Shown piece after piece: positions 1,928 through 53,290 of a DNA stretch of 64,000 nt; within the stretch, counting starts at the first letter, position 1; each line of letters starts with the position of its first letter. Both the position numbers and the translations under genes were made by a program. The notes below the pieces were generated by a model. It worked only from the letters and a program-made list of their open reading frames with translations, did no database searches and had not been told where the DNA came from. Source of the DNA: Takakia lepidozioides (taxonomy: Eukaryota > Plantae > Bryophyta); the NCBI GenBank assembly GCA_030704615.1, contig CM060734.1:52080001-52144000 (forward strand), given 5' to 3'.

Positions 1928-2605
1928 AAATAATAATAATATAAATAGATAAAAAATACGACAAACAGATGAGTAGGGCAGAGATAGAGGACAAGATCCC
2001 CTCTTGACCATAGACTAATTGAATTGGAACAAATTAACCTTGAAAAAGTTGTGCGAGAAGCCCACAATGCAGTTTGATATCCCAATCGCTACCAGCGCAG
2101 CGCCGTATATGGAAAAAATCCAGCTCTTGGAATGCAAATCACCCCCGGAATTAGGCCTTACAACAATTTGAAAACAATTCATATCCTGGTAGATGAACTC
2201 ATCCCCGCCTTCAATGTAAAAAAACAACCTGAAGTTTGAAATAGTTCAGCAAATGCCTTACACATGTGACCCTCTGGCAATTGCACCAGGCCATCTCCAG
2301 CATAATGGAGATGACGGGGAGGAGACCCTGTACAAACCATCCCGAATATCCAGAAATAGTGACACTGAGCGAATAACTCAACGGCTGAACACATAGGTAT
2401 TCGATTGACGAAACGCCTCTGGACGACAAGGCATTCCACCCTATCGCCGGGTACATCAACGGGAATACATGGATCCGATGAACTACGTCGTGCACCGGGT
2501 CGGGGAAGATAAACCGTTGAAATAAATTTAATATTTTATTATATAAGACAATAAGACAAATATTTATTATAAATGCTTCACCCTACCCATGGAGCAGGGG
2601 AAAAA

Positions 2606-2611
<6 letters not shown>

Positions 2612-2665
<54 letters not shown>
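2612..2665. repeat. (AT)n microsatellite
   Basis: About 27 AT units, just upstream of the GC-rich Fanzor block. Confidence 0.95.
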
Positions 2666-2669
<4 letters not shown>

Positions 2670-3179
2670 ATAATATTTCTAAAAATAAATATATTATTAA
2701 TAACGAAAAAAAGTGAACGACGTGTTCAACCAACGATAAACTCAGGAGCTGGAAACGACCGTGTGCATCCAACGATCCACCGTCCACCGATACACTCGAG
2801 GTGGACGCATCCGACGGTTTGTAAACGATGATGATCACTCCTTCCAAAACAATGTTGTTTATAAATACCCTGACTATCCTCGAAACGACGTCATAAGAAA
2901 CAACGGCGTCGTCGTCCGAGGTGCTCTATGGACAGCGCATAGAATTAGTTCATGGAATTAGTGCACATATTTGCAATTGTCGAGTTGTCACACGTTCATA
3001 CTACGCAACGACAGTGAGGATAGCACATTGACGTCGAATGTCACCGGGCACACCACCATCGCGATCAAAAAACGCAAAAGCATGGCCACATACTGGAACA
3101 TTAACCCTTAAACGCCCGCGAGGCCGAAACTGGGCCTCGAAAGATTTTTCAGGCGCAGGAACGTCAGACGGCGAATCCC

Positions 3180-6100
3180 GTGGACTCCAGCGACTCCGAT
3201 TTTCAGAGACCAGTGCCACGCAACCAACGGTCAGAGCCTCCACGCAAACTTCGGACAGTGACACCGAAGAGAACAAAAGTACAACGGCACAACACACCGG
3301 CATGCCCCAACGAATCCGACGTCTCGGATCAGTTTCAAAATCCGCTGCCACGCGATGCTTCGTTGACATTTGCACTTGGCTTTCCAACACCGCCACACAA
3401 ACAACGATCAGCGCATTCACGCCAACGTCGGACAGAAACACCGAATTCAACGACACTAAAACGACACTGTACACGGAGATGTCCCACCGAATCCGACGAT
3501 GCGGATCGGTTTCCAAATTTGCCACCAAACGATGCTTCATTGACGTCAGCGGATTGCAGCAAATTATCAAGACAGAAGTTATTGGGAAAGAAACGACAAA
3601 AAATTGAAGACAGTCCCAATATGTCCAATCTGACGGAAGTCGGCATTCCACGGGCCAGCAGGAAACGTCCAGCTGAGTCCGAAACTGGTGAGACCGATTT
3701 CTCTAGGAATCGGTGCTCCGCGAACTGGCCATCAACGACGGTCTGCCACCAAAGGCCATCAGAATTGCATACATCTGAGATGGCGGTTCCTCCATCCGGC
3801 GAGCGCAACACCACATCCAACGGCCTAGCAGGTCCTCAGCCGGCCGCGCCATCGACGGCTTCGGGCTAGAGGAAACAATAACGCGCCGTCAAAAGGGAGG
3901 CCTTTGACTACACGTCGGTGAAGGTTAGCTTTGGCAAAAGCTTCTGCCTGAGGGACGCCATGAGAAAAGTCGTGGAGGAGACCATCAAGGAATTGACGCC
4001 GCTGGCTGTGGAAGCATCCCTGTTTACGTCGTACCATATCATCATATGTCTTACATAGGGACGGCCCTCCCCGACGGATTGCAACGCAAGTCGACGTTTT
4101 TCAACCGGGCAGTGTGCGCCGTCCTGAACGACAGGAGGCTCCCCCAAAAAAAGGGCCCCGAAATCATCACATCATACGTTCAGTTCAAGCTGCTCCGACC
4201 GACATGATACACGAAACCGATGCGCAAGCCTCACTGGACTCACCTCACCGGCATGCTAGCCGATGAGATGTACGACAACTTCAGGACCTCCCGCGCCATC
4301 AATTTGATTCCTCGCCTCAGGAAATGGGCAAGAATGATGGTGTCAAAATCCGCTGATTCATTCCACGCTGAAAACGTCAGAGCCGCCGTCTCCTTGGTGA
4401 TTATGGCCACACTTGCCCACGAGCACGGATCCGCAGAGGCGCGTGCAAGGCGCGGTACACCATGCTCCGAGACATGGATGCCGGACAGATTGAGAGTTTG
4501 GTCACCATATGCCACCTCATCAGAACCAACCTTCTTCCTGGAGAACTGTTGCCGCTCGACCTAAAGAAGTAGGACTACCTCGCAACAACATGGAAAATCC
4601 TACCTCAGTGCATACCACGAGGATGTTGCCAACGCCGACAGGCTGCATCCGAGACGACGACCGACGTGTGCGAGGAAGCTTAAAGGGCTCCAGCTCTTCT
4701 CACTCCTACCACAAAAGCGCGTCAGGCCAGTCCAGTTAGCCATCACCAACACCATCCTGCGGTCGATCGCGACAAAGGCAACACCAATAGTGCAGAATCA
4801 TCCCGGTCTAGAAAGCATGAGCGACGACGAACAGTGGAGATAGTAAGTTTGCCCCCGAATCCCGCTTGTTTTCTTTCGCGGGGAAGGGGAGAGGATGAGG
4901 GGTACTAGAGGATGAAGTAGCGGTCAGCACGTGGCTGCCGCACGTGCGGAATGACGGGAGGTCACTTGTGCTCCCCTCGTCGTCGTGTCCATTGATGACA
5001 TATGGCCCTTCGTGTTGATTTTGTTTTACTAATTGTGGATTGTGTTGGGATGAAACAGCTTTTTCAAAATCGACCGGAAGTTTGAACGACCCGGAAGAGG
5101 ACTCAAGTTTCAAAATTTTATAACCACTGACGGGGTTGCGGTCAGTGTGCTATCAGGCTCGGCCCGACGCCAACCTGCAGTTACAGCCAGAGTAAGACAA
5201 CTGCTTCATTCACCATGTTTGCTTTTTATTGCCTTTAGTATCGAGTGTACCGGCTCGTGACGCACATGCGGGTGAACTTGTTGGACGACCATCATCGTCT
5301 TATTATGTGCAACGTCAATGGCCATGTGCGGGAAGGCGATATCTTCACCCTCGTTGAATCCGAAAGCGAGACTCGTCGCTTTAGATGAGTTATTCTGTGA
5401 TGTTTCCATGAATCAAAATCGATTTTAGTTGAAGTTAAAACATGGCAACATGATCTGTTGGGGATGTCTACAGCAGAATGGTTTATGACCGTATATACCC
5501 CCTGCAAATATGTGTGGTCGAGTGCCTCCAAGCGCCACAACCTTGTTTTGGTGAAAAACCCCATTTAAGGCGTTGGATATCCGAGAGATTCTCTTTGTGT
5601 TCGGGAAATGTATTGAAGTAAAAGCTTAATATTGTTTCTGAGGTAGTTTGATTGGAGGTGGACAGGCTTGTTGACGCGTCAGTTGAGGGAAAAACCATCT
5701 TATAGATTGACGTTTTCTTAAACGGACGTTGGTCTTGTTTTTTCGCAGGTGAAAGGACGCAAGAAAAAAGAGATGCCCAAACCGACTCCACACACCCATG
5801 TGCCATTGCCTAACCGCGTCGTGGCCATTGACCCGGGCCGAAAGTACCTCTACACGGGAGTGGTGTACTCGCCCAAAGCAAAACTACGGGTGACCTGCAC
5901 AACATTTGGTGTAGTCAAACAGATGTCACTCATTGGATGAGATTTGAGTGTCTACACGGCAATATGGAGGCAGCAGTCTATACCGGAAATCTCTCCACAA
6001 GTGTCTCCCATCTTTTGCTACACGGCTTTCCTGGCGAAGACTAGCCATCGGCAGCAAGATTGCCTTGGTAAATTGCACGATGACATCCTGGAGTACTTAA

Positions 6101-6475
6101 ATGTGGGTTACAGTGCAGCTGGATCAACCACTAATTTTTCACCAAATTTGTGCTGAAGCAATGCAATTGCTGGAAAACAAAGACCTGTGCATCATTACTT
6201 CAGTGATTTATAATTCTTGGACCCAAGAAATATGGACAGAATCTAGTAAATGATCTTTTCTTGCCCAAATCCAATCACCTTTAGAGAGGGGTTGGAGTGC
6301 CCACCGAGACGTCAACGCGGCGGTCAACATCATGCACCGGTTCTGGGAAATGCGAGACTCCCGGCCTCGCCACCCGGCATTCTGCAGGGCGGAGGCAAAG
6401 CCTCTCCGCGATGATGCACAACGGTGGGTTTTGATACTCACGTTGTATTGGTTACAAGATGAAGAGACAAGATGA
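3180..6475 (+). pseudogene. Fanzor1-like (TnpB/Cas12-related) RNA-guided nuclease pseudogene with at least two spliceosomal introns
   Basis: Motifs in Fanzor order: TSVKVSFGKSF...VEETIKELTPLAVEASLFTSYHII (about 3910-4045); LADEMYDNF...INLIPRLRKWAR (4220-4335); LFSLLPQK...LAITNTILRSI (4694-4770); WRY/FFKI...FQNFITTDGVAVSVL (TDG 5126-5134); RuvC-I VVAIDPGRK (D at 5830-5832); RuvC-III HRDVNAAVNI...RPRHPAFCR (D at 6308-6310). Introns 4843-5058 and 5192-5748 (GTAAG..CAG) join the frames exactly. Stops at 3867, 3879 and 4056 plus frameshifts; RuvC-II and Zn finger not found. Start codon uncertain. Confidence 0.88.
6395..6445 (+). ncRNA. Candidate 3' part of a Fanzor omegaRNA scaffold / element right end
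   Basis: Starts immediately after the RP..FCR C-terminal motif. Ends in hairpin CAAC-G-GUGGGU-uuugau-ACUCAC-GUUG. 46/51 identical to 36813-36763 (minus strand), with divergent sequence after GTTG in both copies. Confidence 0.5.
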
Positions 6476-6778
6476 AAGGGGACTAATTAAGGTTGAACCT
6501 GGCCAGCTGATCTAGTACTCATCGTAAAGATGCATGGACTGTAATTTTGTCCAGGCAAAGCTTGCATGAGCTTCAGGTAAATTTTCATTTTTGCTAGACT
6601 ACTGATGTGCGAGATTATAACAAGCTGGATATGTCAATGTCTACATTCACTTGAGCATGTACAGATTAAAAAGCCTTTGTTTGTGACATACAGTGAAGTT
6701 GGAAGTAAACACTACAAGGGTCTTTCACCGAGAGCTTGAAATGGCCCGGTGCTCAATGCAGCAAAAGGAGCGGATAGA

Positions 6779-6922
6779 CTAATCATCAGTTTGATGATGC
6801 TTGTTCACAGCAGGCGTTGTGAGCTTACTCACTTGGATTTGCATAGCCTGGCCCTTGCTTAGTTGTTGCCGCTTCTTGCCATTAAATGACACACAAACAT
6901 TGCTCTTTGTTTCGGGTGAATC
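6779..6922 (-). pseudogene. NAD kinase C-terminal fragment (decayed)
   Basis: Minus-strand translation DSPETKSNVCVSFNGKKRQQLSKGQAMQIQVSKLTTPAVNKHHQTDD* parallels the plant NADK motif SNAWVSFDGKRRQQLSRGD...PTVNKSDQTGDW, with the Trp replaced by TAG. No other NADK exons recognised nearby. Confidence 0.6.
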
Positions 6923-8415
6923 CTATCTAACACAACACATGCACCAATTAGCATTTGGATGAAAGAAATGAAGTCCATGTTGACTAAATCTTAGAAGAGC
7001 CTGACGGAGACGACTGGGTCCTTTTTGGAATTCTACCACTTCGGTCAGGAATGTCGGGTCAGCCCGAGCGATAACGGAATCTTGTGCATATACCTTGTCA
7101 CGAGGTTGGGTAGTGCTGCTCAGGATATACCAAAATTTCCAATAGAATTCCCAAAAGACATTCGGGCGAAACTAAAATGTGCTCACGCCTAGACGAAATC
7201 GATGTTCGTGATATAATAGATGTACTTGTTTCTCCCATGCAAGATGAAGTGCTTGAACTTGTCGAGGTCATTTTTCCATATGATCTTGTTGGATCTTATC
7301 TAACAATGGAGAAGAGTGAGAACACACAAAGACTAACTTTTAATAGGTAACCACACAAAAGATCATACACAATGTAAACTGCTTTATGCGTAGTTTCTCT
7401 CAACATAATCACACAACAAAGAAGGCTATAAACTGAATAAGTATAATGAAAGATGCATCAAAAGACCGTCCTCCACATGCATATACATCAGAGTCTGAAT
7501 CAAAACTCAGAAAAGCGCTGCATACTCCAAATTAAATAATTAGTCTGCTCATTGTGTCCATGCACGCGTTCCATATTTGGCTCTCCTGGAATGCACAGCT
7601 GAAATGAGCGCAGTTACTTGGCTTCATGGACGGTGTTACCAACCCTGCACAAATAATGAGTTCAAAAGCATCCACAGTCCGCTCTTCACACCAATCTGTT
7701 TAAATTCCTCACAAGATATACTGCTTCAACTACAAAGTACACACAACATTCACGCATAGCAATGCATTCATTCACATTTTAGACAACACCACATTGAGAA
7801 TTTTCTCCAAAAAACCTCCTGCCACATACTTTCAATGTAATAGTAGTTTTTCGACAATTATGTTGAACCATAGAATCAAAAGCAGTGGACGAATTGCAAC
7901 AGGATTGCAACTACGTTCAAGCCTAAAACTACCTGATTCTAATCAGCAATGTATTCATTCAACATTGTTGCCTTTTTAAACTACGTCCAAAGCAGCAGGT
8001 ACTGCACTCTACAACTACCTCCGCAAAGCATTGATAGTCCAAACGTACAACTATTTCAACGCATTGAAATGCAGCAATGGCTCCAACTGAAACCTTGCAA
8101 TCTGTCAATCTTCCAATTCCAGAGCGTGATCATTCAGATTACACACTCGGGATGCCGAATTGACAAATGTAATTAAGCAGCTTTCCACCTTTCGGATATG
8201 GTGAGTAAGGAGACATACACATACACATAGCAACAACGTTGACAACTTGAGGCAGAAGAAATGTAGTCATTGCATTTCCAGTAGTTTAGTCACTACAGCC
8301 GCGATAGCAATGAACCAGTTGTATTGCCAACTGAACCACACCAGAAACATGAACAGAGCATTCTAGTGGATGGTCGTCTTGAGTTCTTCACCTTGGTCTC
8401 ATGGTGAGTCGCACG

Positions 8416-8538: not shown

Positions 8539-9565
8539 ACTTCGGTAACAACACGCCGCAGATGGTGACTCCAACTGGAGGCATAAGAGGACTACGGACC
8601 AGAAATTACAGCTGCAGCTTAAGTTCTGATGTCCTGTAGCACTTTCACTGGTCACTGGCCACTGGCCTCTTCGTTTCTGCCTTGGTTGGACTTGTAGGCC
8701 TTTGGTTCTGGACTCATTTCTGTCCTCTTACTCCTTGGCTCTGCAGGTCTTCTTGGTTTTCTCTTGTTTCTCTGCCTGGTTTTGGTCTCTGAGGTCATTA
8801 GCTCTGAGCTTCGATTTGTTCTTAATGACCTCGGCGCTGCAGGTGTTCTTTGTTTCCTCCTCCTCCTTCCGCCCCTCCCCCTTCATCTCTCCCTTGCTGG
8901 CTCTATTCGGTTATGGAGTAGTTTCGGTTTATGGAGCCAGGAGTACCTAGTAAGCCTTCACGGCCTAGAGGTGGTTATTTTTTCCACCTGGACTTCCAAA
9001 TTTTGTAATTTCGGACGTTTTGTCCTTTTGATATAAAGTTTTTCGAGGCCACCGTCCCTCCTTCATTTTTACTTTTTTAAATGTCAGCTGAAGGTTAAAT
9101 ATTTTCTTCATTATACTTTCAAGTAGAAATTGTGAAACCTTTTATGGTCGTTCTGGAAAAAGAGACTTATGTTCGACGAAAAACTGGTTTCTGGAGAGTT
9201 GAGAGGCAGGGTTGCAGATTTGATCAACTGGAGTTTTCAAAAAACTGACTTCAGAAGAGGTGTGACATGTTAGCATATTCGACCAATTGCAGAGTGATCA
9301 GTGTATCTGACTTGAATCAGAACTAACATCTTCAATTACATAATGAACTCAGGAGAGATTGCTTCCGCTCACCAACAAGTAGCACTTCCTTGGCAGCAAA
9401 CGCTGATATGAACTGCATGGGATTTACCAGGACCATGGCTTTGTAAGCTTTAAATACATGTATCTACACCGATGCGACGTCACCCATTGGCTCCTTCACT
9501 ATCCCAGTTTAAAAATTCCTGCTAAACAAGAGTACTGCTAGAACTTCACATTGACATTTGCTGCG

Positions 9566-12500
9566 TCAGAAGTAAATTTGCCGGCATTGAGAAGTCGTAC
9601 TCTCAGATGGGCAATAAGGGCACTTGAATCTCCGAGAGTTGCCCTTGGCAAGCTTAAGGATTGATTGCTTGCACAATACATGGCCACAAGGCATCAGCAT
9701 GGGAGGATTCTCTGCAGTGCTCTGGTCACGTGATACGGGACACGCAAATATGGAATGAAACTGGTACGCTTTGTCTACTTCAATTTCAACTGGTAACTGC
9801 TTCATAGTTTGCCATTCCTGCCACCATCAGCCAAAAAATTACTTGCATCAGCTTCGTCACCTAATACCCTCCAGCCAAACCTCACATTCAGCTGCCTTAA
9901 GCTTGTCTTCAAAAGAGCCAAGAATAAGTGTGCAATCACAAAGCTAGTTGTGAAGGTGAGAACAGCAGACTCAGAATACACAAAATGTGCATGGGAGTCA
10001 GAGTCAGAGCGCACAAAATAGCCAGAGAGGAGACAGAAGAAAAGGTTTATGACATACCGAGAGAGAGAGAATGTACTCATAAGATGTTGTTTTCCATAGC
10101 CTTGTGGCCATAGACCGCACCCAGTTTGGGTGGAACAAAAGGGAACTTATAATACCTTCGTGAGGGGCTCACTCAGGTAGTGTGACTTACCTTGATAGAG
10201 ACAATTAGTTCAGGTTTTCCAGATATCCTTTAGAAAGCCCTTCACACACGCATCAACTTGCGGTGTGTGAGCTGCCCAGCAATTAGACCCCAACAGGCCC
10301 AGGGATATAGGCTCAGCCTCCAGTTGGTGAACCGAGAGCATAAAACGTTGTTGCCATGCCCTTGTGGTCATAGACCCCGCGCCCAGCTTGGACAGAAACA
10401 TAGGTAATAGACACTACCTTTGTGAGGGGTTCGCTACAGTAGTGTGACTTACCTTGATATAAACAATTAGTTCGGGCTTCTCCAGATATCCTCTAGGACA
10501 CCCTTTACACAAGCATCAATTTGCTGTGTGTGAGCACCCAAAGTTAGACCACGACAGGGCCAGGGCTTTAGGCTCAGCGTCGAGATGAAAGTAGGTGAAC
10601 AGAGGTGCAGGAACTGAGAACTCAACAAGATTCACTTCCAAGGAAAAACATATTCTCTGACCTGCTTCTTGTTTGCCATCACTGTGGCCAGTTTTGTCAA
10701 TGTTGGGAGAGCTTGCAGTCCAGCTGAAACTGTTACATGTAGTGGGCTTTCATAGGCCTGGCCTAGAAGGTCGCAACACTCCCTTGTGAACTCAAGGGCA
10801 ACTGCGTCCCAGTGCGAGGGTGCAAGCAAATCTGAGTAAGGGGAAGCCTCCAGGTGGCTTGCCCAGAGGAGGCAACCCATCAGCCTTTGTATCTCTGCCA
10901 AGTACTGAACTGCAAACGGACCGAAGTAACTCCTTGCATACTGGAGTGCCGCTACGCTTCCCGCCTTGTTTAGCACATGCACAAACTGTAGCTGGTGCAG
11001 TTGGAACTCTAGCGCTGATCCCTGTTCACTTAACACGTCGCTAATTTAAAGTTTGCTTTAATGCACAGAAGCATCATGTTAAGTGTATCAGGCATTTATA
11101 CCACAGGGTTCTGTGAAAGACCTGAAAAGACAAGGGGCATCGGAGGCAAAAAGGCAAGCTTCTAGGATCATCAATCTAAGATACTAAGATACCCCAAGAT
11201 ACCATAAAATCCAAGAGGGCTTCCTCCCCTGCCAAGTTTGAAGTTCTTTCAATCATCCATGCTTCCCATTTCTTGCAATAAAAACAAGTGGGGAGCAACT
11301 AAGACTCGAAACAATGCCTCTACCCTGATAATGTCAATATGGCTTTGACATCCAACCCATCAAAATCTATTACAGCAAGGGAGCTACATATACCTTAAGC
11401 TCCAATTGATACAACAGCTGCTCAAGGTCAATGGACAAATAAGGTGTTGATGGCCAACAAACCCATGCATGCACAACGAAACTTGAAACTCAGAGGAAAG
11501 ACAAATGAAAGTACACCTTCGTTTGCAATGCAAGTCGGTTTTGCCTTGCCCAATCAAGAGCTGATTGCAAGTTCTTGGAGCGTAATTGCTCCAAAATCTG
11601 GTACATTTCATAAAAAGGAGTCTTAAGTTTTGCCCCATTGGATTCGTCAGTTTCCTTCACGAAGCAGTCACCAAGATCAAATAGGCCTTGCCGGTAGAAA
11701 TGCAGAGCAATAATTTGGTTGAGCAGATGACCATCAAATACAATCTCTCTGTATGCTTTCGCTATATCTGTAGAGAAGGCTTTGTCCAACATTTTTCCAT
11801 ACTTAATTGCTGCTAGGTTCACCTCCTTCTGAGATACACTGACCTGCGATAAAGAGGCTCAAATTAAAAATCCTGTGAGACTGTCACATGAAGCACATTT
11901 TCGCTGTCTCTGCTTTGTCCTGTTCGTATTGCACCATACATGTTCACATTTGCTCTCACCTAGTGGGCACTTCAATCTTCTAGCTAGTAGCAGTATATGA
12001 GTATCAGTGCAAGTGGCAAACAGTCGGACTATGGTTCTCACCTTCTGCGAGGAAAATACTCAATCCACTTTTGCAAGCTCCTCATCACACAGAACTGCAT
12101 ACGGACAATTTCTGCGCTAAATGGAACTGCATACTAGAAATGTTGTTGGACTGCAGTAGGACACTTAAGAGTAATAGCCTATAGGAGTAACGACAGCTCT
12201 TTGCTGCAGTCCTATTTGGATTACCCATTTGTATAAGATATGCATGGCTTACAACGAGGATAAGATAGTTTCTAGAACAGGGGACATCGGCACTAGAGAA
12301 ATGCAAGAACAACCACACATCGCATCGCATAGCATAATACAGAAGCATTGCTCAACCGTACTTCCGAACCATTCTCAGGGAGTGTCACCCTTGGTGCATA
12401 ATTAGGGACTCTTGACCGTAGTCAGCATGGTAAAAGATTGGACACCAACTTCACTACCCACTCGCACTACAGCAATTCGTTCGCAAAATTTCACCTGATT

Positions 12501-12710
12501 CAATGCGCCAATCTCCGTCAATTGTCCCTGCAAGCCCGTCAACGAATTGTTCTGACTCGCCATGGACCACTCTGAATGCTCAAGAATCTGCTTTGCAACT
12601 AACTCAATTTCATGAAGCAGTTTGTCAATGACATCTTGAGTCTTCGAGTAGGAGAGTTTCTGCTTTTTAGATACTCGATCAAATGCATCCCGAATAGAAG
12701 TTAAATCCAT
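9566..12710 (-). CDS. RMD5: RMD5/GID2 (RMND5) homologue, CTLH/GID E3 ligase RING subunit, copy A
   Basis: Exons 12710-12495, 11843-11517, 11021-10662, 9817-9566 give 384 aa plus stop. LisH (LNQIIALHFYRQGLFDLGDCF), CTLH/CRA and degenerate RING (FHSIFACPVSRDQ...MLMPCGHVLC...FKCPYCP). All introns GT-AG, phase 0. Confidence 0.95.
10065..10620 (-). mobile_element. Two tandem 3' fragments of the non-LTR (RTEX/CR1-like) element, in RMD5-A intron 3
   Basis: Reverse complement matches the family 3' end (...ctatggccacaaggctatggaaaacaacatcttatgagtacattctctctc) and the LEAEP...DACVKGFL.DIWKT coding tail, twice. Confidence 0.8.
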
Positions 12711-14894: not shown

Positions 14895-17710
14895 TCATTC
14901 TACCTCAAAGAGGTTTGTCTCTGCAATCAAGTCCTCATTCTCATCTAAGAGGACTTCTTCCCTATCCAAAAACTCTTTCATGGAAGTACTAAAGCAACCA
15001 ACTCTAGCATCATTTGGCCAATTCTTGACTACACTCACAATCATATCAAGGTTTTCAATATTTAACCTGCACCGTCTGACACCTGCAATACTAAAAACCC
15101 TCTCGGCTTCAATCTGAGATCCAACTATGCCCAAGATTAGCCATGCCAAAAATCCCACATACGGAAAGAGAGACTCGTGTTCTTTCCACCATTTCAAAGG
15201 AGCCACACACTCACCTTCAATTATCTTCGTCCTTCTGAAATGTGATAGTTGTTCTCTCACTACTGTCAATGTCATGTCTTCATTGTGGTCATGCACACCA
15301 AATAAGGACATCTCGTCCATTGTGGAAGTGGGCTGTGATTGGGCCGGAGTATCCGGATGTAAGACCTTGAAACATTTTACTAAAAGAGGCTCTAACACCA
15401 TGCTATCATATTGGGACACAATATGCAAAGCACGCTCTTTGCCCACATATTGTGATACCAATGACAACCCCTTGTAACGTGGGTCAAGCATAAGCGCGAG
15501 CATATTGTGAGCTTTGCGCGATTGAAACCCTTCAAAAAAAATAAAAAATGGTTCCAAGACATATACCACCTCTCGAATCATCCGCCATTCCAACAATGTC
15601 AACTCTGTTGAGAAATCCCTCATGCAATGATCCACAGTTGCAGCCCTGGGAGCACTACATCCTCGCATGCGAATTGTTGTGCAATGGCTGCATTAAGAGC
15701 ATCGGACAACAGCCAAAATCCCCCAGATTGATTCATAATGCACTCATGAACCACAGGCCCTAGAACTATAGAAATTGATTGGGCAATGGTCCACACTTGT
15801 GGACTTGGTATGCGAGACTGCAGTGCCAATGAGGTTTGCCTAGAGTAACAAGTGATTATGGCTTGCCTAAACTCCAAAGTCTCTTGGAAGATGATCACCT
15901 TGGAAGCAAACCGTGTCTTCACCGGAGTCTTCAATTTGGGGGATGAATGTCGCTGTCCACACATGCCTTTGCCCATTCTTGTCTCCCTTTGTCATTTTTT
16001 TTTGTCCAAGTAATGGTTTTTTGCAACTCTGATTGGGCATTTTTTATAGAAACCGATCTCATATCTGTGCATACTTTTGCATCATTTGTTGCATACTGGC
16101 AACACTTGGACATTGCATGCCCAAAACAGCTACCCAAAATGGAGAATCCAACCCCAAACACGCACATGAGACCACCGAATTCAAAGCATTGGTCAAAGTG
16201 GCCAAGTTATCTCCCTCATCTTTGACGTAAGCAATAATGCGAGTATTGAGGCCATACTTCACAAGAAGATTCTTGACTTGATGTGCCATGGCAGCCCCAG
16301 GTGTGTCAGGTGTCTCAAACATGCCAAGAGTCACATGACATTGCTCCCATTGTTCATTAATAAAGTGCGCTATGATGACAAAAGTGTCAGTTCCCCCTCT
16401 TGACATCCACAAATCAAAACTCACAGAGCAAGTAGCACAATTCTGAAGAGATGGGGACATGTAGCGCTCTTTCGTCTTCTCTGCCAAGATTGGAATGGCC
16501 TCATTCACAAATGTCCGTCGACAAGGGAAAACAATCCGAGGATTTTGCCTCATCACCATCCATCTTAGCCAAGGGGATTCTATCAAAGACAGTGGAACCA
16601 ACTCCTTTGCAATGAACAAGACTAAATCCTCATTGAACTGCTTCTGTTGATCATCATTTTGGTTGTATTTCCCGAACTTCTCGTCGATGCTGTCTCGACG
16701 CTGCCCCCCTGTGCTTGGCCACCTTCTACCTGCGCCAATGAGTGAGGCGCCAGTGGCATAGAGCGGCAGGTCAGGTTACTATGGCCAGCACAAGTTTGTC
16801 GTTCTAAGACGTGGGGACAAACAATAAGCCTTTTGTAAATAATTGAAGAGGATGCATGCGTAGTAGTGATGCACAGGTATACTACTGTGTAGCTGCTCAG
16901 TTCGTATGTAGTCTCTCCCTTTGTGGGAGTCATGCTACCCTAAATAGCTACATACAAGAAGGCTTTACGCCATTAATAATTTGCAGAGGGTGCTGCACAT
17001 ACTGGTGTAGTCTGTAGCTCAGTTTGTATGCCCTCTCTCCGTCTGCGGAGTCCTGTAAATACCATTACACAATTACATACTCATGAATTGAGTTGTTCTT
17101 AAACTCCATGCTGTCTGTGCAGTGCAGTGCGCATAGTAAGGAAATGGTGCAGCAGTGTATGAGCTCAAAAGAAGCTATGTTTCTAGGAGTGGGGCCGGGC
17201 CTCTTTTTTGCTGGCCTACGGGCCTTCTCAGGTCCTTCATTTTCCCTCTCAATCCACCTACGCAAAACAATGTCATGTTCTTGATCCACATGCTTTCGAA
17301 GGGCAGATATACCATTGGTTTTGTTATAGGTCACAATGCCCTTCTTGCTTGCAAGAGTGACACCAACAGGATGACATAGAACACACCTCATAATTGTTGT
17401 GGATTTGTTATGTCCACTGAGCAGAGTCTTTTGTTGCATAGAATGCCAATGTCGAAGCAGTGCGATTGTGGGCTTCCAAAAATCCCGTTGTTTTTCAATT
17501 ACTGGAAGCTGCGCCTCCACATCCAACACCGTGTGTGATGGCGAAACTGTGGAAGATGACATTGCAGCCGAGGCTTGAAGAGCTGATGTAAATGAGGCTG
17601 CATGATGAGCATCCTCCGCAACATGGCTCCACCAAAGCTCTCTCATTATCAACATTGATGTCAGGAACAACTTCCATTTCTAGTTCATCGAAAATATTGG
17701 GCTCCATGAC
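14895..17710 (-). pseudogene. hAT transposase with frameshifts (BED finger, DDE core, hATC dimerisation domain)
   Basis: MRCVLCH...YNKTNGISALRKHVDQEH (BED); SVSFDLWMS; AYVKDEG; CFGHAMSKCCQ; TPVKTRFAS; LDPRYK; PLKWWK...GSQIEAERVFSIAG. Split over several ORFs, with about 480 bp of unrelated sequence near 16680-17160. Confidence 0.9.
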
Positions 17711-36411: not shown

Positions 36412-36566
36412 ATCTCTTTCTGTTGTTGCTGGCTCACTGCTTTCATGGAAGCAATCTCTTCCTGTTGTTGCTGGCTCACTGCTTTCATGGAAGCAATCTC
36501 TTCCTGTGGTTGCTGGCTCACTGCTTTCATGGAAGCAATCTCTTCCTGCTGTTGCTGGTTCACTGA
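36412..36566. repeat. 42-bp tandem repeat, about 3.6 copies
   Basis: Unit atctcttcctgttgttgctggctcactgctttcatggaagca. Confidence 0.95.
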
Positions 36567-36762
36567 TTCCAACTTTGCGAGACGTTTCTCAATCTCTGAC
36601 CACCAGACTTCTCTCGCACTTGGAGCTGGTTGACCATGATCTAGATAAAGCCCGAGCTACATACTAGTGCACTTTTGTTTGCTACAAGAAAAAAATTCTT
36701 GCTAGAAGGGAAATAGATCGACCAGCTGCTCTACAGCACGTAATACTATATCGAGATCCTTG

Positions 36763-36813
36763 CAACGTGAGCATCAAAACCCACAATTGTGCATCATCGC
36801 GGAGAGGGTTTAC
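36763..36813 (-). ncRNA. Stand-alone copy of the Fanzor 3' (omegaRNA-like) segment, framed by a 12-bp direct repeat
   Basis: Reverse complement gtaaaccctctccgcgatgatgcacaattgtgggttttgatgctcacgttg versus 6395-6445 gcaaagcctctccgcgatgatgcacaacggtgggttttgatactcacgttg. AGATCCTTGCAA at 36754-36765 and 36814-36825. Confidence 0.5.
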
Positions 36814-37277
36814 AGATCCTTGCAAACTCCATCTAAATGAGTAACCACGCTCGCCGGAAGAGCTCGCCACCATCAAGGCATTCTCTTCCTCAAAGACAGG
36901 ATCAATCAACCAAGTCGCCATCTCGTCGCACCTTCCGGACATGTGCTTGTTCTCCATTTCTCCTCTTACAATACAAAGAAACCAATACAAAGAAACTGTA
37001 CAATCAAGTCCCAATTACAGGTCTCTGATCTGGCATCCTTTTTCTATGATGTTTTTAGCAGTTAAATTACCTTGATGGAGGTACATCACGGGTTGCAAAC
37101 TTTCTTCAGAAAGATATTTACAGAACGACCCGCATTAAGGTAATTCACTCTCTTTTTAGTGCACGTTATTTGCGGCAGCTTCGACTTTATTTATCCAATG
37201 ATGTTTGTACGACTAGAGAAGAGCTCGGATTAGGGTTCCCTTGGCAGCTCTCTTGCAGGCTTGAAGAATCCAGCGCG

Positions 37278-44649: not shown

Positions 44650-47255
44650 CACTTCCTGGTTTGGACTGAGATCAAAAGGTGTTTTCCCACCACCAAGAGA
44701 TCTGTGAAACATTCGATTCGGAAGTGGCGCATAGAAAAATTCCACAATGAGGAGGTCAAGGCTGAGTACGTCCAGGCCTTGCAAGAGGCTCTCCCTCATT
44801 TTGTCCAATCACTCCAAGAACTTCAGTCACGCTCTGTTAACGCAAGAAATGAAGTCGAAAGAGCAGTGGACTCTTGGGAGGGTTTCGTTTCCTCCATGGC
44901 TGACAAGATCATTGGGAGGAAACTAATTGTCTGCGGTAGAGCAGGTAATTGGTGGACTAATGAGATTAAACTCAAGATAGCTGAGAGACGAGCCCTCTAT
45001 AAAGAGTGCTGCAATTTGGAAACCAACAGAGAATTGTGGGCGAGGTACTACCAGCTCCGTAAAGATATCAATCAGCTTGTTAGGTCTCAGAAGAAATTAT
45101 ACTGGGACAAGTTATACAGTGAAATAAACTCAAACCACCATGGTGGTAATGACAAGAAATTCTGGTTGGCCCTTCAACGTTTGTACAAGCCGAAAAACGG
45201 TCAGCAAGTACAAGCGCTGAAGACTACTAAAGGTGCAGTGGTGACTTCATCGGTTGACATTGTCAAAACCTTTGAAACTCACTACAGTATCCTTGGCAGA
45301 ACTTCTAGGTCTAACAGTGAGGGGTCTTCTGCTGAATGGAGGGACACAGTTGGAAAAACTGTTCCTATGATTCAAAACAGCCCTGATGAACTGGAGTATA
45401 TTTCAATGGCTTATAATGCTCCCATTAGTTCTTCTGAGATTGTGGAAGCAATTGAACATTTAAATGGATATAAAGCTGGTGGACCTGATGGTATTGTCAA
45501 TGAGCTTATCAAGCACGGTGGCGATCCCATGATAGAGGCCCTAGTTCTCCTCTTTAACCTTATCTGGAAGACTGAAATGATCCCCTTTCGCTGGCGACAG
45601 GGGGTCATTGTCAATCTATACAAGAAGGGTGACAGAGAAGAACCGGGGAACTACTGTGGCATCACGCTCCTCAATGCTGTTGGCAAGACATTCTGCAGAG
45701 TTATAAGTACTCGTCTCGAGGTTGATCTGGAGTCTAGAGGTTGTTTCCACGAAGGCCAAGCTGGCTTTCGGCGAAACAGGGGCTGTGTGGATCATATCTT
45801 CACTCTAAGCCAGATTATCCAGGGAAGGAAAAAAGAAGGGAAACCCACTTATGTCTTTTTCCTGGATGTCAAAAAGGCTTATGACACAGTGTGGAGAGAT
45901 GGCCTATGGTTCCGCCTCTGGTCTTGTGGGATCAAGGGAAAGATGTGGAGAGTTGTCCACAGCTTGTATGCTCACACCAAAAGCTGTGTCACTGTTAACG
46001 GACAGAAGTCCAACTTGTCAAAGACCAAGGTGTAGCTCAAGGATGTACTCTCTCCCCTCTGCTCTTCAATGTTTTCATCAATCAACTCCTTGAGGATGTG
46101 GAAAGTGAGGGATTTGGGTTAAGGGTGGGTGATACCACCATACCAGCCCTTATGTTTGCGGATGACTTCGCAGGCATAGGGGAGACTCCAACCAATCTCC
46201 AGGAGTTGATTGATTGCGCGAAGAGGTACTTTGATCTTTGGGGGCTAGAGGCTAATGTCAGCAAATGTGCAGTGGTAGCATTCAACGACAGAGGAGAGGG
46301 AGGAAGTGATCTTAAGTGGCAGTGGGGTAGCCAAGAGATCCCGGTCCTCCCTTCCTACACTTACCTGGGCGTTGAGTTCTCCTCCAATTGTAATTGGGAT
46401 GCACATATCCGGAAAGTTGTTCAAACTGGCAAGGGCAAAGCTCTGGGGCTCACAAGCTTTCTGCAACAATTGGTATGAAGTTTGGGACATCCATGACAAG
46501 CCTAAAGGCGGAACAAGACCGTCCAACAAACAAAGAAACAGCCCACATTTCTTCAGAACAGCTAATGTGGGTTTGGGGCAAGTTTGGGATACCTCCTTAA
46601 GCTCTCAATGTGATGAATTCAAGGTCAGATGGTGGGGTCAGTTGAATTGCTTGCTGCATACCAGATACCCTAAGATAATCAACGCTATTTCTTGGAAGCA
46701 AGACCGTTCTGTTAAACAGGCTTAAGTCTTGGTATCTGAATGTTAGTCCAGAAGAAATAACACCACTGGATGAAGCTGACCTGGAGGGGGTTGTGTCCAA
46801 AGTCATGTCTGATGCCCAAAGACTGTCTGATGAAAATGAACCTACCTAAACTTGTTTCCGGTCTGTGACATGGGCGAGGACCTTACTGATGATCTGAAGG
46901 GCCTACCTACCCTTGGCACTAGACTAAAATTTAAGCTCAGTTTGAGCAATAAACAGATGCAGAGAGGGAAGAGGAGATTGTAATTCCTGATGTGTGGGCA
47001 GCCTGAAGGCAACATCCATTTTCTGTACGTTATCTGGGATATTCTCACCAGAGTGACCCTCTTCAGGACGATCAAGAACACAGTCCCTGTACCTCTGTTC
47101 ACCTTTCAAAATCTTGAGGCTGAGCCTAAAAGCCCTGGCCCTATTGGGGTCTAACTGCTGGGCAGCTCACACGCAGCAAGGTGATGCTTAAGTGAAGGGC
47201 TTTATAGAGGATATCTGGAAAACCCAAATTAATTGTCTTTATCAAGATAAGTCAT
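44650..47255 (+). mobile_element. 5'-truncated non-LTR retrotransposon (RTEX/CR1-like ORF2: end of APE endonuclease, RT, decayed C-terminus)
   Basis: Begins at HFLVW (end of APE). KAGGPDGIVNE, YKKGDREEPGNYCGITLL, QAGFRRNRGCVDH, FLDVKKAYDTVWR; after a frameshift near 46020, GVAQGCTLSPLLFNVFIN, LMFADD, YTYLGV. Clade label is inferred. Confidence 0.9.
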
Positions 47256-47860: not shown

Positions 47861-49976
47861 GAAAACTGCATGGCTTATTTCAAGGTCCTATGACTAATCT
47901 TTCCATCACAGCTGCATTTTGTTGCTTTTCTTCTTGACCTAGTCACCAACAACCTCCACAGTTTGTGGAGTTAAGTTCATGACTCTTGATAAAGATGTGT
48001 CAGTGTCACTCCTGACGACCGGTCAGTTTGCTCAGTTTGCTCTTAAAGTAACATTAGTGGCAGATAGTGGCATTTTACAGTGAGCCCCTCACAATGGTAG
48101 TGACTGTTCTCTCTTGTTCCATCCAAACGGGGGGTGGGGTCTATGCCACCGCAAACTTCTTCTGAATACACCTCCTTTCTCCCTGCCTTCTCTGCTTCCC
48201 TTTCTGATGTTCGATGGCAAAGATTTCTTCTACGCAAAATTTGCACTGAATTACCGTCCAGTCTAGTGCTCTCGAATCTAGGTGTTTGATTGCAATATCT
48301 TCATGGGTGCATGTTCAAATACAGGTCTACAAGTTGGTGGTGATTGTGAGAGGGTTATTGCACCGCTCTGGCAGAGGCGTTCGTAGGTAGATTGACATTT
48401 AGAAAGAGCAGGCAGTGGTATGCCCTGAACGCTTCAAGATGAGTGGTTTACATTATGAGGTCCTACTTGGGACTCGCTCAATCATGCATAATCTGCTGGG
48501 ATACACGAGCTGGTTTCTTTCTCAAAAATAGCATTTTCGCTTCGCTTTGCATAGTATCAGTGGAAAGGTGTGGGTTTAAGTGTCGAAGATGGATGTGTAC
48601 AATGAACAGAATCAGTTCAGAAAGGTTTCCACAGCTGAGAACTGTTGGTTTTTGGCATTCAGGTGATAAATTTTATGATGTGTCTATTTTTCCAAGGTAG
48701 ATCATTCCAACAGTTTGGTGCGATGTTTGTGTGAAGTTTATGTACTCTGGCACCGATTGACTGTATGTATTTCACTCACTGAATTTTACTCGACCGGTTT
48801 TGCCCCATCTATTTAAGAATCATTGTGCCACATGAATTATGGGATCAACAGTAGTGTGCACCGCCTGTGCAATGGAGATGATCCTTGCTGGACATGTGGG
48901 AGTGCTACGGGAAGAAGCGGGCTGCAAATGATTCATGAATGCAAGAAGCAGCAGAGAGGACTGACCAACTGTGTTGTAAGCCTCCTCTTGTCAGCCTTCT
49001 GTGGCTTCCACCTTTTTAAGTAGATGCATGATGAGTAGGAAAATGACAGTGGAAAAGATTGTAGCAATTCAAGTCTCTACTGCTTCCTTCAGTAGTGCAG
49101 CCTCCATCCCCAAACCAATCCTTTCAGTTGTTTCTTTCCTCCTCCATTTAAGATTCTCTGTTACAGAGACCCTGATTGAACATCCCAAGTAAAGCTGCAA
49201 CCAGGTTTAAGTGAGAAGGGTTTACTATGTGATGTGCATATTGTCATCCTGCATCGAGTGTTTGCTCCTCCAAAATGTTTCCACTTCAAGACAAACAATC
49301 TGGGGGAGAAGTTATTTTAGTTGGGGTGCAAGAATTCCTAGTATTTCAACAGAGTAACCATCAATCATGTGCATGAACTTTTCCAGCTTCGATACATTCT
49401 GTTCATGACACTCAAACTTCCTCACTGGAAGATCTGTTCATAGATCTCATAACCCTCAATTCCATAGTGCACACATGCAAACCCATACCGCAGCTGTGGG
49501 CACAGAAGTTTCTTCAGTTAGGATTCTGCTTTTCTAGTTCGACTCACTGAAGCCCTGAAGAACTCCTTTATTGCGAACCTAAAATAGGTGTGTATATCTT
49601 TTGAGTCTCTTCAATTATGAATACGTCAGGAAGACAGATGCAACTGCAGCACAAAGGGTGTCTGTTTGGCTTTTGGATCCCACAGATGATAGTATCGCCA
49701 TAATGTGCAACTATTCTCTGCATTTAGAACAGTAACCTCAACTCCTTTCAGATATGAAGCCCACATGCAACTTAGAGAGACCATTTGTAGCAAACAACAC
49801 TAATTTCAAAGGCATGGTAATGAACTGCAGCCAAAAGATACCAACCTTGACTTCTTACTAGAAGTACAGAAAACTGATCCCTTTACACTTGCCCCCCCAT
49901 AATATTATATACAAAGTTGGTGACCATTGACTCCTCTCGCATTCTCCAGTTGCAGTACTACAGGCTATCCCCTACA

Positions 49977-52900
49977 TCAGAAGTAAATTTGACGGCATTG
50001 AGAAGTTGTAGTCTCAGATGGGCAATAAGGGCACTTGAATGTACGTGAATTGCCCTTGGCGAGCTTATGGATTGATTGCTTGCACAATACATGGCCACAA
50101 GGCATCAGCATGGGAGGATTCTCGGCAGTGCTCTGGTCGCGTGATACAGGACAAGCAAATATGGAGTGAAACTGGTATGCTTTGTCTACTTCAATTTCAA
50201 CCGGTAACTGCTTCATTGTTTGCCACTCCTGCCAAAGGTCAAAAGAATCACTCTCATCATTGTCGCTGATAACAGCCATCTCAACTCCAATTGGAAACAT
50301 TCCATTTCAACATCCTTTGCAGAGATCTTGCAAGCGGATAGTTATAACCTACTGGCTAACCCATTGGCCTTAATTGAAGGGTTGATTTTCACAAATACCA
50401 TTGGACACATTTGATAGGGGATTGTAGATAAACAAGAGAGAATGCACTCATAAGACGTTCTTTGCCATAGCCTTGTGGCCATAGACCCCGCCCCCAGTTT
50501 ACATGGAGCAAGAGGAAGTTTGTGAGGGGCTCACTCAAGTAGTTTGGGCTTTCCAAATATCCTCTAGAAAGCCCTTCGGACAAGCACCAATCTGCTGTGT
50601 GGGCTGCCCAACAATTAGACCCCGACAGGGTCAGGGATTTAGGCTCAGCCTCAAGATTTTGAAGGTTGGTGAACAGAGTGGCAGGGACTATGATCTTAGA
50701 TGGTCCTGGAGAGGGTCGCTCTCTGATGAGAATTCCCCAGACATTGTTCCAGAAAATGGATATCGTCTTCCAGGACAATCTACCTTATAAACAGAGCGAG
50801 CGAGAAAAGAGAATTAGACAATAGATCTTGCCCCTAGCCTTTGGCCAATGATCTGAAGAATGCAGATAGGGTGAAGGGAGGCAACCCTTGGGCTGGGAGA
50901 AGAGACTCAAATGGAGGGACAACCAGCACTAAGTGGAAATTCAGTTCATTCTCTCCTTGCACAAAGTCCTTTTATAGTCATTCCTTAACATGCATGCGCA
51001 TTGCCTCAAAGGGCAGTGCAGTTCGTTTCTTCCTTATAGATGTTAGACTGACAGATGCTGACCTGCTTTTTGTTTGCCATCATCACTGAGGCCAGCTTTA
51101 TCAAAGTTGGGAGTGCCTGCGATCCAGCTGACACCGTTACATGTAACGGGCTTTCATACGCTTGGCCCAGAAGGTTGCAACACTCCCTTGTGAACTCCAG
51201 AGCAACCACATCCCACTGTGATGGCGCCAGCAAATCTGAGTAAGGGGAAGTCTCAAGGCGGCCAGCCCAGAGGAGGCAACCCATTAGCCTTTGTATCTCT
51301 GCCATGTGCCGAGCTGCAAATGGGCCAAAGGCACCCCTTGCATACTGGAGTGCCTGTGCACGTCCCTCCTTGTGTAGCACATGCACAAACTGTAGCTGGT
51401 GAAGCTGAAACTCAAGCGATGATCCCTGCTCATTTTAGAGGTCACATGTCAAGAGATTTCTTCAATCTACAGATCATTAGGTAAGGGTGTTAGGCATTTA
51501 CATTGTCACCACCTTGCCCATAAGAGCAAGGTCTTGCAAAAGACCTTAAGGGACAAGCTGGAGAGAAACATTTCGTGAAGTTCAAAAGTTGTTGTTGCTA
51601 ACTTCGTAACTAACAAACCTAAAGTGGCAAGACAAGACTTCCGTTGAAAGAGCTATTGTCACTTGCGGTAAGACAATAATTTAAACTAGTTTGTGTACCT
51701 AGAGAAGTATAGTATAATGTTAAGTATAGGACCTCCCATTGCTCATAAACAAGTGGAGACCTAGCGACTACGTGCACAGTGCACATATGCAATTTATACA
51801 TTCTTCAGGTGTTGAACAGACACAAGTCTACTACAGCAAGTGCACACATCTAAGCAAAGTGTTGCTTTATACAACACTCTCCCACTCAAGGTTGAAACAT
51901 GCCCAGGCCCATGTGACACACATGGACAATTAAACATGAAACGTGCAAGAGATAAATTAAAAGCTATACCTTATTTTGCAGCACAAGTCGATTTTTTCTT
52001 GCCCAATCAAGCGCTGATTGCAAATTCTTGGACCGTAATTGCTCCAAAGTTTGGTACATTTCATAAAATGGAGTCTTAAGGGTTGCCGCATCAGATTCGT
52101 GAGTCTCGTCCACAAAGCTATCACCCAGATCAAACAGGCCTTGCCGGTAGAAATGCAGTGCAATAATTTGGTTCAGTAGATGACAATCAAATTCAACTTC
52201 TCTGTATGCCTTTGCTATGTCTGAAGAGAATGCCTTGTCCAACATTTTTCCGTATTTACTCACAGCTAGGTTCACCTCCTTTTGAGACGCCCCAACCTGC
52301 AAAGAAAGAGGCGCAAATTAAACACTACTTGACTGTCATGATGTAGCACAGTTGTCATCCTTGTTAGTTCGCCATACACTCAGTTTTCTATTGCCATCCT
52401 TCCAGGGCATGGTTTCTACCTCATTCACTGATGGCTAATGCATGGGCATAGCTATATTATTTCTCCTAGTGTAACCATTGAGTGATAGAGAGAGGGAGGA
52501 TGTTGCTTGGAATGTGAAGGTTAGGGCTCGTGGCAAATGACAGAATGACAACTAATGGTGCCTAACCTGCTCGCCCATCCCCCACATTACTCCCTGTTGC
52601 TCTGAAATTACCGAGCAATATCAACAATGAAACTGTGGTGAAAGCTCACAGGCCATCATGGGCATTGGCAAAACGCTGGTGGACGATGTGCCATCGCTTG
52701 AGGTGCCAAACTCAAATAGCTTGGCAATTCACACTGTGACTGTAAAGTCACACTTCTGTGAGTCATGCTTCCAGAACCCCTAACCAATATTAGAGACTGT
52801 CGCAATTAAGTGTTGCACGATTAGGACTCTTGCCGATTCCAGCAGCAGTTCACCTCTTTCAGATTGCCTCACCAGGAAATAAAACACTTGGTACACGTTT

Positions 52901-53290
52901 AGGGGCTCCTGATCCTAGTCCACTAGTCAAAACACCGGCAAATCTTGTCTATATCGTCGTATATTTGTAGCATTTAAACCGATATGGGAGTACGGTAAAA
53001 TCTTGGACCCCGATTGAAATAAATGACACCCCCTCTTTCCAAATTTTGTAAGGTTTGTTTCCAAAGAATTTCACCTGATTTGATGGCCCAATCTCCGTCA
53101 ATCTCCCGTGCAAGTCTGTAAGTAAAGCCTTTTGGTTCGCCACTGACCACTCTGAAAGCTCAAGGACCTGCTTTGCCGCTAACTCAATCTCCTGAAGCAT
53201 TTTGTCAATGACATCTTGTGTCTTCGAATAGGATACCTTCTGCTTTTTGGATACACGGTCAAATGCGTCCCGAATAGAGGTTAAATCCAT
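49977..53290 (-). CDS. RMD5: RMD5/GID2 (RMND5) homologue, copy B
   Basis: Exons 53290-53075, 52296-51970, 51425-51063, 50228-49977 give 385 aa plus stop. Same intron positions and domains as copy A. Confidence 0.95.
50435..50790 (-). mobile_element. Non-LTR element 3' fragment in RMD5-B intron 3
   Basis: Reverse complement reads LFTNLQNLEAEPK... and ends ggccacaaggctatggcaaagaacgtcttatgagtgcattctctc. Confidence 0.8.

Follow-up and report, generated by a model that had tools for sequence, protein, structure and literature searches.

The last 51 nt of a repeated, Fanzor-bearing unit are its most widely shared part. At a rough probability of 0.55, we read this segment (6395-6445) as the 3'-terminal module of a multi-copy Fanzor1, Helitron2-like element that ends at 6445, with the module probably also contributing an omegaRNA stem. 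The element would belong to a multi-copy, intron-containing Fanzor1 transposon family, and its module would comprise a short conserved stretch and, after it, a terminal hairpin, with the nuclease ORF of less damaged copies stopping at a TGA in the hairpin loop. In its behaviour the module would resemble the 3' end (~50 bp) of a rolling-circle element of the Helitron2 type, a mechanism that we infer, and a second copy at 36.8 kb would be a 51-nt, 5'-truncated insertion between 9-bp target duplications that start right after TTTG. The hairpin would probably double as the guide-proximal stem of an omegaRNA, with a scaffold that overlaps the ORF end and a guide that begins at 6446. The coordinates of the features are collected in Table 1, where "the window" is the whole 64-kb stretch of DNA that was analysed.

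Table 1. Features of the Fanzor element and of the stand-alone module copy in the window
Feature	Position	Strand	Basis
Candidate 5' ATIR TGTGCATC, reverse complement of 6413-6420	2762..2769	+	sole inverted 8-mer match; suggestive only
Foreign 423-bp piece in place of the nuclease middle (RuvC-II, zinc finger)	5880..6302	+	contig divergence
Conserved Fanzor tail, RuvC-III motif and the residues after it	6303..6394	+	translation, Pfam, contig joints
RuvC-III motif RDVNAAVNI	6306-6335	+	translation
25-nt stretch of the window copy, skipped in another genomic copy; shifts the nuclease frame	6372..6396	+	contig joint, frame analysis
51-nt terminal module; no other part of the element is as repeated or as well bounded	6395..6445	+	depth, loose ends, stand-alone copy
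Candidate 3' ATIR region in the module, ahead of the terminal hairpin	~6400-6420	+	
Terminal bulged hairpin, 10 bp, 6-nt loop	6419..6445	+	sequence, local folding
GT..AG intron removed in part of the X5 probable RNA; donor CAACG/GTGGGT (cut at the slash) inside the hairpin 5' arm	6424..6693	+	joint 6422->6693 (cut +1), depth 8.9
TGA in the hairpin loop, inferred nuclease stop in less damaged copies, 11 nt before the boundary	6432..6434	+	frame analysis
Unique flank, putative guide position if an omegaRNA is made	6446..6465	+	depth drop, eight unlike continuations
3' copy of the 9-bp target duplication CAAGGATCT	36754..36762	-	
Stand-alone 51-nt module copy, 46/51 bases identical	36763..36813	-	blastn, alignment
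TTTG (36823-36826), then 5' copy of the 9-bp target duplication CAAGGATCT (36814-36822)	36814..36826	-	

The Fanzor relic and its right-hand boundary

The DNA of the window is eukaryotic and carries a decayed TnpB/Fanzor-type gene on the + strand, from ~3.9 kb to 6.45 kb. Translation revealed a RuvC-I motif, VAIDPGRKY, near 5815 in addition to the RuvC-III motif. Both motifs are kept in the window copy, and the stretch between them (RuvC-II, zinc finger) has been replaced by a piece that we regard as foreign because other copies diverge from the window after 5878 and before 6303. All frames of the nuclease contain stops, and the 25-nt stretch close to the module adds a frameshift. The window copy is a dead relic, so RNA from this locus could act only with the protein of another copy. 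A Pfam search with the last gene piece returned Cas12f1-like_TNB / PF07282 at a sub-threshold E of 0.014. When language-model look-alikes of the two motif-bearing pieces were collected (Atlas), PF07282/TNB-domain clusters made up 24 of 30; further look-alikes were eukaryotic (Mucoromycota) DUF8286 clusters and TnpB clusters. Sequence searches of the PDB with two gene pieces returned nothing, the pieces being too short. An exhaustive protein search with the 73-aa C-terminal piece matched solely a translated CRISPR array, word-index searches with the 73-, 118- and 254-aa pieces were blank, partly owing to the length window of that search, and none of ten window ORFs was found by exact look-up in the protein collection. 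Candidate GT..AG intron signals are retained in the genomic copy (~4845-5057, and an acceptor near 5749), which argues for copying at the DNA level rather than the RNA level.

A long open frame upstream of the nuclease core contains a 153-nt tandem duplication with 75% identity (3215-3367 and 3392-3544). Most of the foreign piece (5952-6302) is matched exactly by a separate 351-nt contig at ~2x the depth of the unique flank contig, and the same part is found in both probable RNA runs. Elsewhere the foreign piece is joined as 6302-GTCCAT-5880, a tandem- or circular-permutation-like arrangement.

Other genomic copies were examined through contigs from the same organism, assembled from two DNA runs and from two that are probably RNA, which were aligned to 2600-7600 at 80% likeness. 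Depth was summed over contigs and is not a copy number, so the reading rests mainly on where contigs start and end. At 2729, 2737, 2795 and other positions, all contigs of the best DNA runs carried a non-window base; the runs may therefore be from a different individual, or the assembly may have local errors. In each DNA run, eight contigs matched the window up to 6445 and then continued for a median of 255 nt unlike the window. These eight continuations agreed with one another at 0.46, which is about the value for eight random sequences. As a rough guide, the summed depth in run X1 ranged from ~60 to ~180 along the gene body, reached ~250 in the bin 6274-6440 (~2x the gene body) and fell to 38 after 6441, with the unique flank contig at 29.

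The boundary was also seen within the window. Comparison of 3000-6700 with the rest of the window revealed nothing that recurs besides a 51-nt match on the minus strand; the tail, 5' region, flank and foreign piece were each without a second copy there, and the flank at 6446-6465 had no other match within the 64 kb. By blastn, 6397-6445 aligned to 36763-36811 (-) at 92% identity (E 6e-14), and 46 of 51 bases agree when counted from 6395. The preliminary description had reported that similarity stops after GTTG at 6445, and in the blastn comparison this is exact; the similarity of the stand-alone copy also begins sharply, at 6395-6397. We conclude that 6445 is a real repeat boundary because the in-window match and the eight contigs per DNA run all stop there, which bears out the element end originally proposed. 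What had been called a second copy is indeed the only match in the window, but it is just a 51-nt piece with no Fanzor gene attached. The segment had also been placed directly after the last Fanzor motif, whereas it actually starts 60 nt past RuvC-III. The module was available as two actual sequences, with the other copies known through their coordinates and 30-nt consensus ends. A DNA pattern scan with a 17-mer of the module hit 94 metagenome and 11 viral loci, all attributable to chance, with at most 32 of 51 bases alike.

On the left side, about seven copies' worth of depth continued without a break between 6303 and the module. Four contigs per DNA run entered at 6303 from a common upstream, ..NTACYRTTWN, in frame with RDVNAAVN, and four contigs entered at 6395 from a different common upstream. 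One contig of X1 and of X4 contained the joint 6371->6397, corresponding to a copy that lacks the 25-nt stretch. Three X6 contigs (1.2-2 kb) held 6401-6439 with 5-6 mismatches, flanked on both sides by unlike sequence.

The neighbourhood of the relic contains several other repeats and gene pieces. A 134-nt exon-like piece at 6781-6914, open on the minus strand and with sharp ends on both sides, resembles (~84%) an internal portion of expressed 1.3-kb contigs from X5 and X6 and is probably a gene fragment or pseudo-exon beside the element. Over 6942-7108, the summed contig depth in the DNA runs was ~45x that of the unique flank contig, which suggests that a short sequence immediately downstream of the Fanzor relic is highly repeated. 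Further away, a segmental duplication (9561-12710 and 49972-53290, ~40.4 kb apart) shows 80-92% identity in blocks and includes a CTLH/CRA-domain exon at 10635-11036 (-, Pfam E 3e-32). A hAT transposase remnant with a hAT C-terminal dimerisation domain (E 8e-8) lies at 14898-17670 (-), and a reverse-transcriptase ORF (RVT_1, E 1e-12) lies at 44704-46032. Short repeats ending in (CT)n surround the RVT_1 ORF and occur in both orientations at 10.0-10.6, 44.5, 47.1-47.8, 50.4-50.7 and 55.2-55.5 kb.

Hairpin, inferred coding overlap and probable transcription of the module

The 10-bp bulged hairpin that had been described at the end of the segment is present in the sequence. It is built of a 4-bp lower stem, a G bulge at 6423 and a 6-bp upper stem with one G-U pair, closed by the 6-nt loop. 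Local folding of 6415-6450 as RNA gave -11.9 kcal/mol (z -3.0), and 2 of 200 shuffles were equal or better; the local DNA fold of the hairpin had a z of -2.3 relative to shuffles. The whole 51-nt or 76-nt stretch folded no better than chance (z -0.8). With 15 upstream bases added, the fold consisted of two adjacent hairpins (z -2.5); the upstream stem of the window copy uses its private 25 nt, and the conserved module itself holds one clear stem. The stand-alone copy has two substitutions in the stem, C6422->T and A6436->G, both of which keep G-U pairing in RNA; neither is compensatory in this comparison of two sequences. When the stand-alone copy was folded as DNA, the hairpin was no longer predicted. 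We take the stem changes that keep G-U pairs as a hint from one comparison, not as covariation. An Rfam search of 3000-8000 returned nothing relevant.

Most of the segment appears to be coding in other copies, a point overlooked in the first reading. The frame analysis was performed on 30-nt loose-end consensus strings joined to window bases, not on full copies. With the 25 nt removed, RDVNAAVNIMHRFWEMRDSRPR reads in frame with QSLSAMMHNGGF and then meets the TGA at 6432-6434. The second upstream variant is open only in the frame that ends at this same TGA. Because two independent upstream variants are open only in that frame, the stop is placed in the hairpin loop, and the nuclease frame of less damaged copies appears to end there with the tail QSLSAMMHNGGF. 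A stop inside the loop would mean that most of the 51-nt segment is protein-coding outside the window copy.

Transcription of the tail was assessed with run X5. The RNA label of this run is a guess; its coverage of the 5 kb is confined to 3100-3131 and 5880-7209, a pattern that suits RNA better than DNA. Assembled contigs of this kind show long probable RNA; small RNAs, RNA ends and strand are beyond their reach. An unspliced X5 contig spanning 6394-6722 (depth 19.1) contains the module together with 277 nt of unique flank, and another part of the probable RNA carries a GT..AG joint on the + strand. From these two observations, the tail is probably transcribed on the + strand with read-through into the flank, and a precursor that contains both module and flank probably exists. 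The splice deletes the hairpin 3' arm and the proposed guide, and its acceptor lies in the unique flank. We regard this RNA as arising by read-through from a dead transposon copy, with partial splicing.

It is plausible that the segment is an omegaRNA scaffold. In published Fanzor and TnpB systems, the guide RNA lies at the right end of the transposon, can overlap the ORF and uses the adjoining flank as its guide (PMC10432273, PMC10530073). The corresponding order is present here: RuvC-III (6306-6335) is followed by the inferred stop (6432-6434) and then by the boundary (6445). Conservation ends at the boundary, and the following nucleotides differ among the eight contigs per DNA run. The element itself lacks an intact partner nuclease. 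Solved Fz1 omegaRNAs have a conserved 7-bp SL1 and one to three further stems (PMC11423790). The smallest of these, PpFz1, has just SL1 and a 4-bp SL2 (PMC11423790), so a short scaffold in the present element is compatible with known omegaRNAs.

An omegaRNA role might even be the whole explanation, which we consider possible at somewhat less than even odds. The segment would then be kept as the 3' scaffold of a Fanzor guide RNA with its guide from 6446, and the transposon mechanism would be irrelevant. Consistent with this, the hairpin adjoins the boundary at 6445, probable RNA spans the module and the flank, and the two stem changes of the stand-alone copy leave G-U pairs in RNA, whereas its DNA fold loses the hairpin. 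Published Fz1 omegaRNAs can also be tiny, with the 7-bp SL1 and one short stem (PMC11423790). However, such an account leaves the stand-alone 51-nt insertion with its target duplication unexplained. The single hairpin is smaller than any solved Fz1 scaffold, Rfam gave no match, the one comparison made showed no compensatory change, and part of the RNA splices out the 3' half of the hairpin along with the proposed guide.

The stand-alone copy and the mode of spread

The Fanzor1 elements CRe-1/2/3 of Chlamydomonas reinhardtii are non-autonomous Helitron2 elements (Bao & Jurka 2013, PMC3627910). What they have in common with true Helitrons is limited to the 5'-terminal ~200 bp and the 3'-terminal ~50 bp, and the elements are often 5'-truncated, with 3' ends that are intact and overabundant (PMC3627910). 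Their target duplications are variable (7-19 bp), and the 5' copy follows right after TTTT, TTTG, TTTC, TCTT or TGTT (PMC3627910). Helitron2 ends carry a 3'-terminal hairpin and an ATIR 20-30 bp from the end (PMC3627910).

On the minus strand, the stand-alone copy is arranged in the order TTTG, CAAGGATCT, 51-nt module, CAAGGATCT. This is a single example, and a duplication preceded by one of the five reported tetranucleotides is expected in ~2% of cases by chance. At a distance of ~200 nt from this copy, a 42-nt unit is repeated three and a half times in tandem (36412-36571), in an array that is open on the minus strand.

The whole pattern fits a Helitron2-type terminus in which the 3' hairpin would be the transposition signal, a possibility that the first reading had overlooked. 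A 3'-terminal hairpin is present at 6419-6445. Overabundance of 3' ends and 5' truncation are reflected, respectively, in the excess of summed tail depth over the gene body and in the stand-alone 51-nt copy, and the target duplication after a T-rich tetranucleotide is seen in one case. At the opposite end, the candidate 5' ATIR TGTGCATC is located where the depth rises from single-copy to multi-copy, between 2750 and 2795. Its geometry is fitting, but chance alone would give ~0.5 such inverted 8-mer matches over the whole region searched. The predicted 5' hairpin was no better than shuffles, and the sequence before the candidate 5' end (~2762, position uncertain) was not T-rich. No target duplication was found for the main copy, and no Rep/helicase element was found in the window. 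Near the probable 5' edge of the repeated element, an (AT)n microsatellite (2614-2666) lies just outside and a TATAAATA box (2861-2870) lies ~100 nt inside.

The stand-alone copy could instead be a one-off templated filler from double-strand-break repair, with the excess module copies belonging to diverged Fanzor subfamilies and no Helitron-type mechanism at work; we judge this unlikely. The right junction shows a TTG microhomology, or a 12-nt direct repeat if so counted, and the four contigs entering at 6395 have a common ORF-compatible upstream and may represent a Fanzor subfamily. In contrast, the inserted piece starts at the module's own left edge and ends exactly at the family boundary, and its 5' duplication follows TTTG, one of the five CRe tetranucleotides. 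The three X6 contigs likewise hold the module core between sequences unlike the window. Because the piece is the family module on both sides, a Helitron2-type one-ended insertion fits better than a repair scar.

A role of the segment as a conserved exon-intron junction of the Fanzor gene (donor 6423/6424) is very improbable. The GT..AG joint at 6424-6693 in the X5 probable RNA speaks for it, but conservation ends 22 nt into the 'intron', the acceptor is in unique flank, unspliced RNA has ~2x the depth (19.1 vs 8.9) and an in-frame stop follows within the module. Less probable still is LINE-type retroposition of Fanzor transcripts as the source of the 3' overabundance and variable duplication. 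Truncation at the 5' end and variable duplications are typical of target-primed reverse transcription, and Fanzor1c-LINE associations have been reported (PMC10530073), but no poly(A) or simple-repeat tail is present at 6445 and the candidate intron signals are kept in the genomic copy. The least probable account is a boundary near 6394 with 6395-6445 as flank or guide, the alternative that the preliminary description had offered, or as a repeated target site. Several copies do lose similarity to the window at 6395-6397, a break explained by the 25-nt stretch private to the window copy, but the depth is unbroken between 6303 and the module, two variant upstreams are in frame with the module and terminate at its TGA, and the unlike flanks start past 6445, not past 6394.

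Comparison with known Fanzor and Helitron2 systems

The analysis locates where a Fanzor1 transposon family truly ends on its right side in a plant-like genome, which is a prerequisite for identifying its guide RNAs, its TAM and any intact copy. It also connects this family with the Fanzors that Helitron2 elements carry in green algae. An active copy, if there is one, would represent a land-plant Fanzor with a very short scaffold, of interest to plant genome editing and to transposon biology, in the latter case for how a nuclease helps a rolling-circle element. That Fanzor cuts lead to Helitron2 target duplications has been proposed only tentatively, for Chlamydomonas (PMC10288648). A broader combination, which we rate as quite unlikely, is that in a land-plant-like genome one 51-nt module may unite the C-terminal codons and stop of Fanzor1, the 3' transposition hairpin of a Helitron2 and the guide-proximal stem of a compact omegaRNA, and that the staggered cuts of Fanzor by TTTN-type motifs may make the variable duplications of one-ended Helitron2 insertions.

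CRe-1/2/3 (CrFNuc) are among the closest known systems. As in these elements, an intron-containing Fanzor1 gene lies on a multi-copy element with a conserved ~50-bp 3' end and a terminal hairpin, 3' ends outnumber gene bodies (here judged from summed contig depth), and a 5'-truncated copy is found whose short target duplication follows the T-rich tetranucleotide TTTG. Intron-containing CrFNuc copies are all on Helitron2 elements (Jiang et al. 2023, PMC10530073). The CrFNuc fRNA is at the element 3' end, and 20 further stand-alone fRNA copies are present in the genome (PMC10530073); these scattered copies of the fRNA region in Chlamydomonas resemble the stand-alone 3'-end copy described here. 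The host differs, being a plant-like genome. Here, only 11 nt appear to separate the ORF end from the element end; the Chlamydomonas fRNA, in contrast, is in a 3' UTR. Unlike in CRe-1/2/3, the 5' flank of the main copy is not T-rich, and the ATIR is a candidate only.

The right-end position is shared with TnpB omegaRNAs (IS200/IS605, e.g. ISDra2) and with those of the Fz1 proteins SpuFz1, GtFz1 and PpFz1 (PMC10432273, PMC11423790). In these systems, too, the scaffold can overlap the stop codon, a stem is next to the guide and the guide is the flank past the boundary. In contrast to them, the present module has one clear hairpin and a broken nuclease, and it is known from DNA and long probable RNA contigs. 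Fanzor1 in Streptophyta has already been published (PMC10432273 extended data; KnFNuc, PMC10530073). Like KnFNuc of Klebsormidium nitens, the present Fanzor1 is from the streptophyte lineage, is multi-copy and has probable RNA extending past the ORF (PMC10530073); unlike the present gene, KnFNuc is without introns, the two being compared by description. Fanzor1 in streptophytes and the Helitron2 link in Chlamydomonas are thus both known, and the 3' module described here is a further member.
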